This document shows, one piece after another, positions 38,001 to 48,175 of a DNA stretch of 64,000 nucleotides. The stretch is from Trichoplax adhaerens. Its lineage: Eukaryota; Animalia; Placozoa. Within the stretch, counting starts at the first letter, position 1. Every line of letters begins with the position of its first letter. The notes beneath the pieces were generated by a model. That model was not told where the DNA came from and made no database searches. It saw only the letters and a program-made list of their open reading frames with translations. A program made the position numbers and the translations under genes. The DNA lies in the NCBI RefSeq assembly GCF_000150275.1, contig NW_002060954.1, forward strand, positions 1,550,001 to 1,614,000, written 5' to 3'.

Positions 38001-40493
38001 CAGTATTTTTCGTGGCCAATCGTGGCCACCATTCAGACATCGGGGGCATCACTCCAGGTACCATGGAAAACATTCGAAATTTTTCCTTGTTCTACTTGGT
38101 TTAAATTGCTAATATGGAAATTGTTACTAAAATTCCAATACAGGATCGATGCCGGCAAGGTCTACGACTTTAGAACAGGAGGGTGCAATCTTTAAGTCTT
38201 TTAAGCTTGTAAAGAATGGAATATTTCAAGAAAAAGGTAACTATTGAAATCCATGAAGTAGTTGTTGTGTTGTTAAATTTAATACCAATGTTTCGAATAT
38301 CTTATTGTAGAAGTTACAGAGATGCTTATGCGCCCTGGACAAATTCCTGGAAACAGCGGAACTCGTAATCTTCACGATAATTTGGCTGATTTACGTGCAC
38401 AGGTCGCTGCAAATCAAAAGGTAAAGATATCTAAGTTGTTCATTAGCGACGATTTTGCTTCTTTACATTTGGCAGATAACAAAGTTTATTGCATATTGAT
38501 AGGGCATTACGCTTGTAACAGGCTTGATTAAAGAATATAGTCTGGAGGTTGTTCAAGCCTATATGACTCATATTCAGGTTAGTACTAGCAGATTATTTGT
38601 CAGTTTAGAAATCAAAGCTAATCAATTTGCAAAATATAAGCTCTGTCCTATTAATGTTTCTTATGGAATAGGAAAATGCAGAAGTTGCTGTGCGAGATAT
38701 GTTACGAGAAGTTGCGAAACGTAATAAGGTAAATTCTATAGCAATATAAGTAGAAAATTTTGTAATAAGTTAATTTGACTTCTCTTCTTGCTTCATCAGA
38801 CAAAAGAAGGAATAGCAACGCTATCTGCGGTAGACTATATGGATGACGGTACACAGATTCAGTTAGAAGTCACAATAAACGAGGAAGAGGTTCATATAGT
38901 TTCTGTCTAATTTTCAAATTTATAAATTTTATTTTTAGACGGCTAAGTCTATGCTATCATCCTTGTAGGCTAGTGCTGTTTTTGATTTTACTGGTACGGG
39001 GCTTGAAGTTGCAGGAAATTGTAACACTCCACCAGCAGTAACGTTGTCAGCTCTCATTTATTGTTTACGATGCATGATAAATCACGATATACCCCTTAAT
39101 CAGGTTTGTTTAATTTCTAATTTAAATCTTGTACTAACTACTTTCAATTGGTATAGCGAAGTCTAAGGCATTGTTTCGTAATTTGATTATATTTACAATT
39201 CCAAATTATGGTCATTAGGGCTGTCTAAATCCCATCAAGACGATTATTCCCAAAGGCACAATACTATATCCAACTGAAAATGCTGCTGTAGTTGGCGGCA
39301 ACGTCCTTACCTCACAACGTATTGTTGACGTTGTATTCAAAGCATTTTCTGCGTGCGCTGCTTCACAGGTACCTTATAATTAATACTTTATTATACGCAG
39401 TGCCTCTCCATCTGTGTAATTTTGTTAATTCCTAGGGATGTATGAATAATATCACTTTCGGCGACAGAAGTATTGCTTACTATGAAACTGTTGCTGGAGG
39501 AGCTGGAGCGGTAAGACTTGTAATTGTAAATATTTCCAACGAATTATTGTATGCAGACTGTAAATTTTACTTTTGAAAAATTCTATATCTACACTTGTAT
39601 TACCTCTATTTCAAACTTATATATCAGGGGCCAACTTGGAATGGGCGCAGCGGTATTCATACACATATGACGAATACTAGGATCACCGATGCAGAAATCT
39701 TAGAAAAAAGGTACAAGTGCTACCGTCTTGAATTTGAAGTTAACGAGTTTATACCGCTTTAATAATATCAGAATAAGCCTTCTGATGTCTTAGTAACACA
39801 GTTATCCGGTATTTTGATAAGGGATTCTTCAAAATTTGTATTACTTTTCATTAGATATCCTATCATTTTAAAAAGTTTTACAATTATGCCTAATACTGGT
39901 GGAAGAGGACAATGGTGTGGTGGTGACGGAGTGATAAGAGAATTGATGTTTAGAAAGTCATTAACACTTTCTGTTTTAACTGAGCGCCGGGTCTTTGAGC
40001 CGTATGGATTGTTGGGTAGGCAATAAAGAGAATAATGTTATAGTTGGCTTTGATTATTTAAATTCATTTTCTAATATTTATACAAACATAACATAGGAGG
40101 AGAACCTGGCAAAAAGGGACAGAATATTTTAATATATAAAAACGGACGACAAGCCAATTTAGGTTCCAAAATTTCAATCGATGTTGAGGATGGTGTAAGT
40201 ATGAAAGACAATTAGATATTGCATTTACTTTTGACCTGAGATGATTACTTTAAGGCTTGACGGATTTTAAAATTTAAGATATAACAGAAGCTTTATAATA
40301 CGATTAAATGAATTTTGGTTAACGTTATAACTTTTAGCTATTTTAGATAGTAATATAAAAGCCCTGATTTTCAGAAGTGATAATGTTAACGTATATATAT
40401 GTATTTATTAATTCACGCGATACATAGGATATTTTTCGACTAATATCGCCTGGTGGCGGTGGCTATGGGGCATATAATCCGGTATCAGATTAA
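32008..40493 (+). CDS. OPLAH: 5-oxoprolinase (ATP-hydrolysing), multi-exon
   Basis: [18 protein letters not shown] start. Motifs: [105 protein letters not shown]. Ends [15 protein letters not shown]. Confidence 0.97.
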
Positions 40494-41073: not shown

Positions 41074-43512
41074 TTACTGATTAGCATACCCTTTCAATTT
41101 TATAAATTTTGTTAAAGCTAAGTATGCAACATTTTGACGTGCTAGTTTTTTGTTTTTATACGAATTTAGACCCTTAATTGTAATCGTTTTCGAATCGTCC
41201 GATTCTAAATAAACTACACCAAAAAATGAGAGAGTTCCGTCATCCTGTCGCTGCTCTTCGTAACTGTATTTAGCCAATGGTATCCGTAATTTCTGACATA
41301 TCATCATTAGCTGGCTAACATAATTAGTTGCAATGGTTTTACCCACTGAAGATTCTGCCAAATAAACATTAGTGATAACATCACAAGATAAGACACGCAA
41401 AGATATTCCATTGATAAATGTAGCGTAGGAAAGGAGTTAATACATTCATATACAGTATGTATGTACTGTATACTATAAATAGCAAAAGTTGTAATTATTT
41501 GCCTCTTAATTTAAAAATCGTTATACCTTCAAATTCTGATAGATTTAACAGCATTTCCTTAACGTCTTCTTCAAATTTTTTATTTTTTGTTGGTTTCACA
41601 TCTTTTGCATAACTAACCAATATAGAATCATCTAGTATTGCGGGATTTACGCGATTACAGTGAAAATAAAAAGTGTAAATTAGTTATATAGTAATATCTA
41701 TGAGGATAATCATCGCGAAGGTAAAGAAGTTAAGGGATTTTAAATTACCTCGGGGTAAAGGCTTCCGTAGAAATTCCGGTGATGATGCCATAACAACTCG
41801 ATTAACACCTTTATTCTAATTTATATGATAGGAGGTATTTAACAATGTACATGTAGCAGTTATTATAACGTTCTTTATAATAGAATCTTGGATACATAGC
41901 TATTACTACAAAGTCGAAATAGCAAGAACGCAAAATTCTCCAATAAAGTCCTAAACAGAGAGAAGACTCTACTCTGAACACAGCAATGTTCATGTGCAAT
42001 AATAAGGTATCATTTCTAAATTAAGTCTTGCCTTAGTGAAATTCATAATCACTGATGATAATTTCTTGGCATCTTTATTACTAGCAGGAGTCGGTAATAT
42101 TTTATTAGTCTTTCTTCCTTTCGAAGAATATAACTTGTGTTCATACACTACTTTAGGATCATAAATATGTAACGACTCTTGCTTTGGCATTCGCTTTGAT
42201 GATTTCTATTTGAAAAATTACATCATAACAAGCTTAGTAATGTATATATATACAGTGGATTAGAATAGAGTTATTATTCCCTAAGCTGTAATTTCTCTAC
42301 AATATACTCTACTACAGCATACCTACTAGATGGGATAATATTTAATAGGGTACTCTTAGTAAGTTTATATGCATATACCTCTTTATATCTGTTCGGTAAT
42401 TTTATAGTTGCAGTAGAAGTAGGTATGATTTGATCCGAGTCTTGCTCTAATGGCTTGTTGTCATCTTGTGATGGCTGATTATCAGTTACCGATTGGCTAG
42501 TCCTTAATATTTTAGCCCTAGTTTTATATTCCTATTTGTAATGATGATGAGCATTTTTCAAAAATAACATACGAGGACATAATTTCTTGTAAGACTAATA
42601 AATAACTATTCGAACTACCATTAAATAAAATGTTACCATCATCTGTAAGTGCTGATTATTACTATCTATCACGGTAAAAGGAATAATTTAACGGTCTGTA
42701 TTTTTCTTATACTATTCTTGCCACTTCAACGTTTATTCTGGTCTATTACCTCTTTTTCTCCATTTGGTAGTTGTGCCCAAGCGATTCTGACTGAAGATTT
42801 CACTTTAGTAAATTATAGTGGAATAATATCAATTCATTTTACTATTAAGTTCATTGTATCCGTTAAAGTTTAACGTAAATTTTCTATTCTATATATAGTT
42901 CATTGACATTGAAAAACTTGTAATTTCAAGTATTAAAGTGTATTACCAGAAAACAGTCATGTTTCAACAATATTACTAGCATCAAAACATGATCTTATTA
43001 TATGACCTAACATAGTAAAGGTTGATGGTGCCAGACTTACAAAACTACAAAATTTGTATAATATATTATACCTGCATTTTGTTGGTCTCCACTCGCTTTA
43101 AGCTTTGAAAATTTCTCGTTATATTCTTTGATAAAGAGTGTATATGAAGTTCTAATAACAGTAAATACATTTACCTAAATTAAACAGATATGTTTTTGCT
43201 ATTGACCTTCGCGGTAGAGCATTGGTGCACTTCTAATAGCTATTCCGTTTAGGCAAAATACATAGTATATAATTTCATAATGACTTACACTCTCTTCTGT
43301 CGCATGAATTGCTTCGTTAAAATGATTAACGCAGAGCTTATAGAGGAGCCGCTAGGTGAGAATAGACACAATCTAAAGAAAGAAAAATTAGAAATGTTGA
43401 TCAGCTACATGAATCACGCCATTTATATACGTATTACGCCAAATATCAAGCTAGATAGCTATGATATACTACTTGCATACCCTGTTCCTCCAAGTTTTAA
43501 TCTAAATTTCAT
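41074..43512 (-). CDS. Uncharacterised protein with an N-terminal HMG box and a C-terminal double-stranded RNA-binding domain
   Basis: Preferred model: exons 43512-43481, 43372-43289, 43151-43072 and following give MKFRLKLGGTGLCLFSPSGSSISSALIILTKQFMRQKRVTSYTLFIKEY...RIAWAQLPNGEKEEYKTRAK (HMG SYxLF and WxxLxxxEKxxY). The last exon reads NYVSQLMMICQKLRIPLAKYSYE...FFGVV...KKLARQNVAYLAL (dsRBM pattern). The 5' end and middle exons are uncertain. Confidence 0.7.
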
Positions 43513-44089: not shown

Positions 44090-44740
44090 TCTATCTACAG
44101 TATATTAGGACCATAGAGATGGAAGAAATTCTTTTCTTAGATATCTCTGATCAGAATATACTACAGAACGGACGGCAAAAACTGTCTTATGTTTACGAAT
44201 ACTTTCTGTAGCTGCGGTGCAGTATATGTTTATGATCATAATACGGCAAAAACTGTCTTATGTTCACGAAATGCTTTCCGTAGCTACGGTACAGTATATG
44301 TTTATGATCATAATACGAGTATACTGTACTACGAAACAGACGGCAGAAACTTATCTTCTTTTGTGAATGGTGCCTGTCTACAGTTTATCGGAACTATAAA
44401 GATAGAAGAAATCCTTATCTTATATCTCTGAACATAATATACTACAAAAGTTGATAGAAACTGTTTTCTTCTTATGGAGTATCTGTCTATAGTTTATCAG
44501 AAGCGTAGAGGTAGAAGAAAACCTTTACTTATATATCTGATCAGAATATGCTACAGAACGGATGCTGTCTATCTACGGTTCCGATATACGAGATTGTTAG
44601 AAGATCTTTTGTTGTGTCCCCATGATCAGGCATACTGCAGAACGCATGGCAGATGGTTGCTGCAAATTGTCTTCTTTTTAAGAATGTTTATCTACAGTAT
44701 ATCAGAACTATAAAGATATAATAAATCCTTTTCCTATGAC
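44090..44740. repeat. Degenerate ~110-bp repeat array with an embedded 71-bp tandem duplication
   Basis: A TCTACAGTWTATC..AGAAGAAAYCCTT..ATATCTSTGATCAGAATATRCTACAGAACGGA-like unit recurs at ~44090, ~44375, ~44485 and partly ~44690. ACGGCAAAAACTGTCTTATGTT..GATCATAAT is duplicated at 44172 and 44243. Confidence 0.75.
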
Positions 44741-45314: not shown

Positions 45315-48175
45315 TTATTTCGAGTTCGGGCTTTTTGTTGGAGAGAATAAAACTTTACCAACATTCTTTCGCTCGTGTATACGACGGAAGGCATCGGTAA
45401 ACTACAGTTTTATGAAATGAAAGAAAATATTATTTGCAGCGGTGTGATTTAACCAGCCTTATAGTACAACTTGATTATAAATACTTCACTACTATAGATT
45501 GTAAAGTACATTTAGTTATCACTTACATCTTCGAAAGCATGAACAGAATCAATTTTCGGTTTAACAATTCCGTCATTATACCATCGAACAATATCAGAAA
45601 AAGCTGGAGGTAAAATTTTTTTGTAGTAGCCAGTAAACAAATGGCCAAGGTGAACTCCACCAACCATCTTGTTATCAGCCATCAGGTCTAATGGACTCCT
45701 TCCGCTCGTGTTCCACCACTAAGGAAATAGTAGAAGAAAAAATTTTAACAATGTAAATGTTACAATTACATTTTTGTGTTAGTTGCTTGCTGCTACGGTT
45801 CAATTTCTATCACTTGAACACAAAATAGTACACGTGATAATTTGATAAAAGTTGAGGCTATAAATTAAAACGTATGCGTAACTTAAAACTAACTTACTAA
45901 CATACCGTTTTGGCTATACTCATCAAACTACGACTCCCACCAGTTACTATATTAGCACTCCCTGCAAATGGGAACACATGTCCGTATGTTATTGTAGTAT
46001 CGCTTTACAACAAAAAAATACTGCCAAGAAAATATTAAAGATTGTGCCGCGGTAAACCAATAATCAGATATATTTACTATTTAGTATAGCCTTACCATAG
46101 ACGATTTGTCTGCCAAAGGTTTTTGTTAAGTCATAATTTCTTTTATTCTCCGTGCCACCTAATGGGTCTAAAACCAGATCAATTCCCTCTGGTTCTAATC
46201 TAAAAATGATAGAGTCATTTTAAGACTGTATTAGTCTACTAGTAAATTGTATATTTAGAATGAGATATTACTAATATCTTTAACTAAAGGAATATACGAA
46301 ATATATTGATTCATTATGTCAATTAAAATTAAGAAATATAAAAGCGTAATACTTTCTTATCTCATTGACATAGTCTTGGGTTCTGTAATCGATTAAATGG
46401 GTATATCCATTTTCTTTTGCGCCTTCATGCTAGTAATAAAAAGTTATTGCATATTACAAATTAATTTTCATAGATAGGCAATTTACATTTTATCATTTAT
46501 TTTATCCATGGGAAAGACTGCGTATTTGTCTGATTTAACAGTAAACTAGCAATACCTTTCCTGCGGAACATGTACCATAAAGCGTAACCTTAGGGACAGT
46601 CCTGCAGAGCTGACCAACAGCATAGCCCTGCATAAGATAATTTTTTATATTAAAGACAATATAATGGTAACTTCAATTTCAAGTAATCTAAGCTAGCAAA
46701 TTATATATTGGTAAAATTGGGTGATATAAAATTTTTGACTTACGACACCGCCTGCAGCCATATGGCATAGAACGCTTTGGCCTTCTTGTAAATTACCAAA
46801 ATTAAAGAGCATGACGTAGGTCGTTAGGTAGTTTACAGGGATAGCAGCCCCTTCTTCGAATGACATACTATCAGGCATTACCACCACTAGATCGGCAGCA
46901 GTAATGGCATATTCACTCCATCCGCCGGATCGACATACACCTATTACTCGAGTTCCAACCTGACAAGTAAAGGCAAGAGATTTCTCCAAATAAATACACT
47001 TTCTAGCCTAATAGAAATTTATCTGCTACTTCATATCAAGAAAATAAAATTTTAAGTATTCTACTACAGATGTAATATCAAGATATCATGATGAATTTAA
47101 GTAACTGTAAATAAATAATGTTTTTCATTTAGTGCATTAAAGTATTCATAAAAGCATATATGACATTACTCTTGATAGATGTCCTACCATTCGCGTAACG
47201 CTCTAATATCAAATTTGTGATACTTACAGCAGGTTCAGTCACGCCTTCACCTAATTTATCAACCACACCAGCAACTTCATACCCTAATACACAAGGCGGC
47301 GTAGGATTAACATCATAAACCCCTTGACATGCCATCAAGTCAGCAAAGTTAATTCCGCTACAATAAAGCGATAATTATATGATAATATAATGAGTTCAGA
47401 GGATATCCGCATGATAACATATCATATAATTATTACAAGGTAATCTAGGCAAGATCTCAAAAGAATTCTGTTAATTAAATAGCAATGTACCAGCACTATT
47501 AGAATGCAAAGCAGGAATTTTTAGCTATCTGAGGGCTTCATCATATTTAGGCATCCACTAAATCTGATAATGGAATGACAGTAGCTCGGTTGCACTATAA
47601 AATTTTAGTATCATGCTAAAAAATGGAGCCTATCCACCTGGTGAACTTATGTTTTTAGTGTACAAGATTCAATAGTATAAAATGCAGTAAATCAATTTAT
47701 GTTATCAATAGGCTAACTAATTAAAATAAATACGCGTATATGCACGCGCTTATAATATAATTAATTATATATTATTAATGGCATTTGAACAAGATAAATT
47801 TTGAATAGAGTGCAGAATTAAACAAAGACCAAACTTTCCAAATACTACCAATTTATAAGTTATTTGCAGGTTATCATTTAATATTAATGATAGTGGATCG
47901 TGTACGCCATCGCTGATTCTAATTATGTACGTGATGATAATGTTGTAAAATGCTCTAATTAGCCAAGATATAGAATTACATATCGTGTACATTACGAAAA
48001 ATGCTGGTAAAATCAAGTCCATTTTTACAGTTTAAGTGTCCACCTACCATGCTTCAACTTTAATTCGAATTTCGTCTTTGGCCGGTGCAGCAAGGGATTT
48101 CTTTTGTACCTGGAGTTTGTTAACACTGCCATAGCCACGTAGCACTAACTGCTTATTTGTTTTCTCTTCAGCCAT
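45315..48175 (-). CDS. VAT1: Synaptic vesicle membrane protein VAT-1 homolog (MDR/quinone-oxidoreductase-like), copy A
   Basis: MAEEKTNKQLVLRGYGSVNKLQV start. Motifs: ACGINFADLM, LGYEVAGVV, EEGAAIPVNYLTTY, HMAAGGVG, IDYRTQDYV, GIDLVLDPLGG. Ends HERKNVGKVLFSPTKSPNSK*. Confidence 0.92.

Follow-up and report, generated by a model that had tools for sequence, protein, structure and literature searches.

The minus strand of a 64,000-nucleotide stretch of Trichoplax adhaerens DNA (C1403:1550001-1614000, hereafter the window) raises the question of whether a placozoan gene joins an HMG box to a double-stranded RNA-binding domain (dsRBD) in one protein, and what such a protein would do. A preliminary description made from the DNA letters alone had placed both domains on one exon chain. 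Sequence comparison indicates that the locus is a genuine protein-coding gene of nine exons, present in a single copy and restricted to Placozoa as far as visible. Its predicted product of 342 residues consists of an acid-free leader of about 36 residues, one HMG-like box, a linker of about 150 residues in which two motifs are conserved, and a dsRBD at the C-terminus, and is basic overall (K+R 59 versus D+E 35). HMG boxes and dsRBDs are both ancient and well-understood modules; the gene combines these known modules in a new way, and the architecture appears undescribed.

The best explanation, to which we assign a probability of about 0.6 and which is drawn from the biochemistry of such domains, is that the protein acts as a two-headed (bivalent) nucleic-acid tether. 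The HMG box would bind and bend DNA, or bind distorted or structured nucleic acid, and the dsRBD, separated from it by the largely disordered linker with its two strongly conserved motifs, would hold a duplex of A-form RNA or a partner protein that binds dsRBDs. The effect would be to bring RNA duplexes, or a partner in RNA processing, to a DNA template, either in the nucleus on chromatin or in the mitochondrial nucleoid. As proposed, this fusion, conserved within a single lineage that belongs to an animal phylum among the first to branch off, would be a compact natural adaptor from DNA to double-stranded RNA. Its study could reveal how templates and RNA duplexes are linked in placozoans, be it in chromatin silencing, in antiviral sensing or in their unusual mitochondria.

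One gene in three placozoan lineages

The gene model was read from the minus strand of the window, and the resulting exon chain was cross-checked against a protein of Trichoplax sp. H2 and against two further placozoan lineages. The H2 protein (RDD37570.1, 'hypothetical protein TrispH2_009317', 335 aa, here P0001) is 95% identical and has the same exon chain and N-terminus; it stood in for the joined product in all whole-protein tests, and the exons of the window were scored singly. The gene runs from an ATG at 43512-43510 to a stop codon at 41076-41074 on the minus strand, with 1029 nt of exon sequence (342 codons and the stop), so that the limits first proposed, 41074-43512, are exactly its stop and start. 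The peptides quoted in the preliminary description were all located as well: QKRV|TSYTLFIKE across exons 2 and 3, WAQLPNGEKE|EYKTRA across exons 4 and 5, and NYVSQLMMICQK...KKLARQNVAYLAL in exon 9.

An 8.2-kb contig of a second lineage (L001) carries all nine exons with order, strand and intron phases as in the window, and a collinear chain with identical phases is present in Trichoplax sp. H2 (L016). From the third lineage, exons 1-7 were found on one contig (L027) and exon 9 beside a 5-oxoprolinase gene on another (L014), both from one sample; the dsRBD of this lineage shares 71% identity with the L001 domain. As originally described, a single exon chain carries both domains, and it is conserved in these three deep placozoan lineages. 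Between T. adhaerens (H1) and L001 the proportions of nonsynonymous (pN) and synonymous (pS) differences are 0.28 and 0.59, with a ratio of nonsynonymous to synonymous substitution rates (dN/dS) of about 0.30, and all exons lie below 0.4 save the short exon 7. The low dN/dS of the linker exons joining both domains indicates that the linker is coding and constrained.

When exon 9 (92 aa) was compared by phmmer with 1.84 billion representative proteins, only three matched at E <= 0.001, namely P0001, an 85-aa protein from Logan assemblies (P0002, 60% identical) and a 2806-aa protein that was rejected as spurious. Beyond these, word searches with P0001, a dsRBD profile and an exon-6 profile yielded only P0004, P0005 and P0006, which are open reading frame fragments on further placozoan-like contigs. 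No relative outside placozoans was found among the 1.84 billion representatives, and no paralogue in the Trichoplax genome (105.6 Mb in 1414 contigs). Only the H2 model turned up for the locus in the 5.8-billion and 1.84-billion protein collections, with no T. adhaerens protein, and the gene seems unannotated in H1 within those collections. MAKER produced the H2 model from evidence that included Trinity transcripts (PMC6057997), which is suggestive but not proof; the supplements of that paper do not mention the gene, and the literature searched contained nothing useful under its locus tag. The gain for annotation is a corrected nine-exon model with a probable GC-AG intron for a gene otherwise recorded just as a 'hypothetical protein' of Trichoplax sp. 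H2.

The C-terminal domain and its possible partners

The assignment of the C-terminal domain to the dsRBDs is solid; the domain is non-canonical and very divergent. Exon 9 of the window matches the Pfam dsrm profile (PF00035) with 26.0 bits, where the cut-off is 23 (E 1.4e-5); its orthologues score 21-22.3 bits, just under that cut-off. An AlphaFold2 model from a four-sequence alignment reached a mean predicted local distance difference test score (pLDDT) of 76.9 and shows the alpha-beta-beta-beta-alpha order (H11-21, E26-35, E41-50, E56-65, H68-90). When this model was searched against the PDB with Foldseek, the top approximately 45 matches were nearly all dsRBDs, most with probability 1.00 and with template modelling (TM) scores up to 0.81, among them DCL4 dsRBD2, DRB7.2, Loqs dsRBD3, MLE, TRBP, DHX9, Staufen dsRBD5, HYL1 and Xlrbpa. 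The profile match, the fold and these structural matches together confirm the terminal dsRNA-binding motif of the preliminary description. A four-sequence dsRBD profile run against the PDB returned only HYL1, at a non-significant E of 0.37.

What the domain binds is less certain. Canonical RNA-binding 'type A' dsRBDs have a glutamate in helix 1, a GPxH loop, and KKxAK where helix 2 begins. In the register of the HYL1 alignment, the helix-1 glutamate is Met or Val in the four sequences and DDGT replaces the GPxH loop, so that only region 3 of the three canonical RNA-contact regions (NKKLARQ; KKxAR motif) is kept. All four share, without variation, N-K-K/R-x-A-R-Q where helix 2 begins and the acidic DDGT of the beta1-beta2 loop. 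We take the domain to be a 'type B' dsRBD by the classical definition. A firm reading as 'dsRNA handling', raised as a possibility in the preliminary description, is not supported by this comparison, given the lost glutamate and GPxH loop and several best structural matches that are protein-binding dsRBDs. Judged by these residues, RNA binding through the lysine motif is possible, and protein docking is a serious alternative.

One competing explanation is somewhat unlikely in our estimation: a 'type B' dsRBD would serve mainly for protein contact or dimerisation, for example with Dicer or another dsRNA-binding protein, and the partner rather than RNA would be recruited to DNA. The replacement of the helix-1 glutamate and of the GPxH loop in all four sequences is in line with this explanation, and the best structural matches include the protein-contacting domains DCL4 dsRBD2-DRB4, Loqs dsRBD3, TRBP dsRBD3-Dicer, Staufen dsRBD5-Miranda and PACT D3. 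However, the invariant region 3 is the main phosphate-contacting element of the fold, and in the structural comparison canonical dsRBDs in complex with RNA (HYL1, Xlrbpa, MLE, DHX9) reach scores similar to those of the protein-binding domains.

The N-terminal leader and the mitochondrial question

The leader had been described as free of aspartate and glutamate over the first 45 residues or so and as resembling a mitochondrial presequence. The first statement holds: the first acidic residue is residue 48, inside HMG helix 1, which has a chance of about 0.003 at the protein's own D+E frequency of 0.119, and L001 and L027 are likewise acid-free to about residue 48 although the leader is poorly conserved (48% identity of exon 2 in L001). 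For the second, composition gives a mixed answer. The leader is rich in Ser, Thr and Leu, its first 50 residues contain five Lys and three Arg, and only two Arg fall within its 36 residues; it further contains a 24-residue uncharged, fairly hydrophobic run with a 19-residue hydropathy maximum, KD(19), of 1.51. Such a composition is ambiguous and would fit a presequence and a signal peptide equally well. The leaders of the other lineages are more presequence-like in that their charges are spaced more evenly.

One alternative is a mitochondrial nucleoid protein of the TFAM type. In TFAM, the presequence directly adjoins the HMG box. A cleavable presequence would here direct the protein to the mitochondrion, where the HMG box would pack or bend mitochondrial DNA and the dsRBD would capture mitochondrial dsRNA or RNA-DNA hybrids. 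Consistent with this, the leader stays acid-free in three lineages despite its poor sequence conservation and directly adjoins the HMG box, and no obvious two-box TFAM-type gene was seen among 25 six-frame PF00505 matches in the genome. However, the protein has one HMG box only. Neither Pfam nor exon-wise profiles gave any signal of a second box in exons 6-8, where AlphaFold2 predicts mostly coil, and a candidate second, degenerate box in exon 6 was rejected for want of profile support. When P0001 was compared by phmmer with every PDB chain, the matches at E <= 10 were only AvrPib, which is spurious, and the HMG box of HBP1, with no TFAM or Abf2 chain. The few arginines and the uncharged run of the Trichoplax leader are as signal-peptide-like as presequence-like, and the genome scan that lacked a TFAM-type gene was insensitive, having missed the present gene too. 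We regard a TFAM-like, mitochondrial protein as an unlikely, minority possibility, and the nucleoid protein first suggested is not supported by the single box, the linker exons without HMG signal and the absence of TFAM/Abf2 from the PDB matches.

Placozoan mitochondrial genomes are large and intron-rich, with trans-splicing. A still more specific proposal is that the protein is a placozoan nucleoid factor that acts beside or instead of a two-box TFAM and couples mitochondrial DNA to the double-stranded or hybrid RNA arising from such a genome. We consider this distinctly improbable; if true, it would represent a previously unknown solution to mitochondrial DNA packaging and RNA surveillance.

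The 25 matches of the six-frame scan were mostly classified, as five Sox, HMGB, UBF, TCF, HBP1, SSRP1, two HMG20, BAF57, WDHD1, a GCNA-like protein with SprT and HMG domains, and CCDC124; four were left without a family (L020, L023, L026 and C1384:208249). The classified matches held no obvious two-box mitochondrial factor. The scan is blind to the present gene because its box is split over short exons, so that the lack of a TFAM-type match means little. The literature searched contained nothing useful on a Trichoplax TFAM. One gene was considered as TFAM/Abf2-type and rejected (L022, G000:C1393:961800-964900, minus strand): its best PDB match is yeast mitochondrial Abf2 (E 4.8e-6), but Pfam identifies a WDHD1/AND-1 box (E 5e-10). 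This case illustrates that a best PDB match can mislead. Another gene (L024, G000:C1410:102700-105900, minus strand) encodes a SprT-like protease domain on an exon with the HELCHA motif, a zinc-finger-like exon and a weak HMG box without the Trp, and looks like a gene of the GCNA/ACRC type. Two of the matches without a family are genes with a single HMG box, one with an exon rich in Lys and Arg ahead of the box (L020, G000:C1414:2090900-2094000, plus strand) and one with a long acidic tail (L023, G000:C1413:7234700-7237900, minus strand).

The probable HMG box

The N-terminal domain is very probably an HMG box, although it falls short of curated standards. It occupies parts of exons 2-5, of which exons 3-5 each carry one of its three helices; because of this split the single exons are too short for a Pfam HMG match. 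Its fold-defining residues are the best conserved, and the motifs TSYxLF and W..L...EK..Y...A are kept in all lineages. The KRxxSY strand has Ser rather than Asn, which we take to mark an HMG box of the non-sequence-specific type.

Structural comparison pointed to the same family. In a structure search of the ESM Atlas, which contains this protein, with residues 25-105, eight of the ten listed nearest sets consisted in the majority of HMG-box families and a ninth had an HMG-box minority; the matches of this region had TM scores of 0.59-0.69 across approximately 70 residues (about 30-104). In the corresponding feature search, HMG-box clusters made up two of the three top matches. The HBP1 box, the best PDB sequence alignment of P0001, is aligned full-length and in register at E 0.83. 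Comparison by hhalign with eight bona fide Trichoplax HMG boxes aligned residues 39-95 of P0001 in the correct register with P 0.02, and exon-wise scoring of the H1 and L001 sequences placed exon 3 on profile positions of about 10-25 and exon 4 on about 38-50, with a few bits each.

Evidence against the tether and the weaker alternatives

Several observations count against the two-headed tether. The HMG box lies under both curated Pfam cut-offs, with 19.8 bits for HMG_box_2 (PF09011; cut-off 22.4, E 1.3e-3) and 15.7 bits for HMG_box (PF00505; cut-off 25.4, E 0.021), yet nearly the whole profile is covered in both (positions 9-65 of 72 and 5-58 of 69). The single-sequence AlphaFold2 model of P0001 places helices at 42-56, 60-75 and 79-96, but its pLDDT (34.6 overall, 50-57 in the HMG region) is too poor for claims about an HMG fold. 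Exon 9 had no dsRBD match in a phmmer search of the PDB. RNA binding itself is not assured because two of the three canonical RNA-contact regions are lost. That both domains lie in a single mRNA is inferred, though strongly, from sequence conservation and the evidence-based MAKER model.

A further observation concerns the two Trichoplax strains. In the comparison of H1 with H2, 7 of 1011 exonic sites and 7 of 1426 aligned intronic sites are changed, the introns being no more diverged than the exons. All seven exonic changes are nonsynonymous and five lie in the dsRBD, which is possible evidence of relaxed constraint. Four of these five (V>A, Y>N, S>L, K>N) affect the region of the beta-sheet, and the fifth (Y>F) is near the C-terminus (window 41077-41352 versus L016:8159-8434). 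The lack of synonymous changes is not significant (P of about 0.19), and the clustering in the dsRBD is nominally so (binomial P of about 0.02). The pattern could reflect relaxed constraint or an arms race, with counts too small to decide between them.

The modest HMG scores invite the explanation that the 'HMG box' is a chance three-helix basic segment and the protein simply an orphan dsRBD protein. Pfam scores under the gathering cut-offs, a best PDB sequence match of only E 0.83, a low hhalign probability and exon-wise scores of only a few bits speak for such a segment. A chance origin is nevertheless very doubtful, for several weak tests agree on one family and one register, conservation across lineages is highest at the diagnostic residues, and eight of the ten listed nearest structure sets are in the majority HMG-box families. 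The HMG-box signature of the preliminary description is present in its peptides, and its family is probable. That a neighbouring HMG gene and a dsRBD gene were falsely fused by gene prediction is highly improbable. In its favour, the single mRNA is deduced and databases contain dsRBD-only calls (P0002, P0004). These calls, however, were made in prokaryotic style on genomic contigs with the introns still in place; exons 5, 6, 7 and 8 end at splice donors without a stop and in conserved, compatible phases in all three lineages, and exon 8 shows conservation ahead of every internal start that could be used.

Comparison with known systems

Searches of proteins, Pfam, the PDB and the literature returned no named family that combines an HMG box with a dsRBD, in agreement with the earlier remark that no named animal family is known to combine just these two domains. 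Like TFAM and Abf2, the placozoan protein has an acid-free N-terminal leader directly before an HMG box of the non-sequence-specific type and is basic overall; unlike them, it has one box instead of two, a C-terminal dsRBD and no detectable TFAM/Abf2 sequence similarity. With Maelstrom, a cluster of which is among the ESM Atlas structural neighbours of the HMG region, it shares the joining of an N-terminal HMG box to an RNA-directed domain in an animal protein. It differs from Maelstrom in ending in a dsRBD and in having a leader, which Maelstrom lacks, and Pfam scans of P0001 and of the exons gave no match to the MAEL domain.

The Dicer-partner proteins TRBP, PACT and Loquacious and plant DRB4, HYL1 and DRB7.2 resemble it in their dsRBD fold and are among the top structural matches (TM 0.6-0.8), but they carry two or three dsRBDs and no HMG box, and phmmer against the 1.84 billion representatives revealed no sequence-level orthology. 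The box is of the HMGB/UBF class, and by analogy with HMGB1-type proteins a promiscuous recognition of nucleic acids is plausible. In contrast to these, the placozoan protein combines a single box with a dsRBD; the gene for the true Trichoplax HMGB, which has an acidic tail and two boxes, is found at another locus (L004).

Gene model and neighbouring features

The gene lies in AT-rich eukaryotic DNA and its exons are short (Table 1). The donor position of exon 1 is identical in all three lineages. A longer exon 1 was considered for L001 and dropped, as the acceptor ..aag|GTTGCAG fits the frame of exon 2 to the short exon in L001 and L027. The internal Met34 of Trichoplax is Val in L001 and L027, so that the translation start must lie in exon 1. 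For exon 8, AlphaFold2 predicts a helix at P0001 225-239 with low confidence.

Table 1. Exons of the placozoan HMG-box and dsRBD gene, with positions in the window
Feature	Position	Strand	Description
Exon 1	43481..43512	-	10 codons (MKFRLKLGGT) + GG; donor GG|GTATGC; counterpart with equal donor position in L001 (538-569) and L027
Exon 2	43289..43372	-	Remainder of acid-free leader (LCLFSPSGSSISSALIILTKQFMRQKR) and first basic HMG-box residues; open frame, conserved in L001 (pN 0.31 versus pS 0.85)
Exon 3	43072..43151	-	HMG helix 1 (TSYTLFIKEYNEKFSKLKASGDQQNA); L001 identity 72%; HMG profile positions 10-25 when scored alone
Exon 4	42750..42802	-	HMG helix 2 with conserved Trp (KSSVRIAWAQLPNGEKE); HMG profile positions 38-50
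Exon 5	42379..42531	-	HMG helix 3 (EYKTRAKILRT), then polar, acidic low-complexity linker; P0001 residues 39-97 match Pfam HMG profiles
Exon 6	42032..42205	-	Conserved motif KRMPKQxSLxIYDPxVVYxHxLYS and Lys-rich stretch; likely GC-AG donor at 42031
Exon 7	41749..41815	-	Short linker exon (NKGVNRVVMASSPEFLRKPLPR), ends in phase 1; phases match L001 and L027
Exon 8	41527..41631	-	Conserved pre-dsRBD segment (DDSILVSYAKDVKP...MLLNLSEFE); L001 identity 62%, dN/dS 0.16
Exon 9	41074..41354	-	dsRBD and stop codon; orthologues P0001, P0002, P0004

All introns are of the GT-AG type except probably intron 6 (donor AAG|GCAAGA; window 42030-42053), which splice-site comparison suggests is a GC-AG intron. 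In the H2 model, RDD37570.1, exon 6 ends with ...KKLSS at a GT donor (after 42053), which drops seven conserved codons (VIMNFTK). L001 has no GT at that site; its exon continues for seven more codons to a canonical AAG|GTAATG at the same place as the Trichoplax AAG|GCAAGA, and these codons show conservative changes only (VIMNFTK versus IILNYSK). The GC-AG intron, and with it the product of 342 aa, is preferred because L001 has a GT there and none at the site of the H2 model, and because the seven codons are conserved. Both donor choices keep the reading frame.

The downstream neighbour is a convergent 5-oxoprolinase (hydantoinase A/B) gene at 39814-40100 on the plus strand. H2 and both other placozoan lineages retain it, and its exon beside the gene in L001 is 80% identical to that of the window. 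Upstream and on the same strand, a zinc-type alcohol dehydrogenase/quinone oxidoreductase gene (45316-46400, minus strand) ends near 45316; outside the window, H2 alone showed it. Within the 1.8 kb of intergenic DNA that precede the gene, a 72-bp unit occurs twice in tandem (window 44172-44317, 92% match), and dispersed copies resembling this unit seem to be present between 44100 and 44700.

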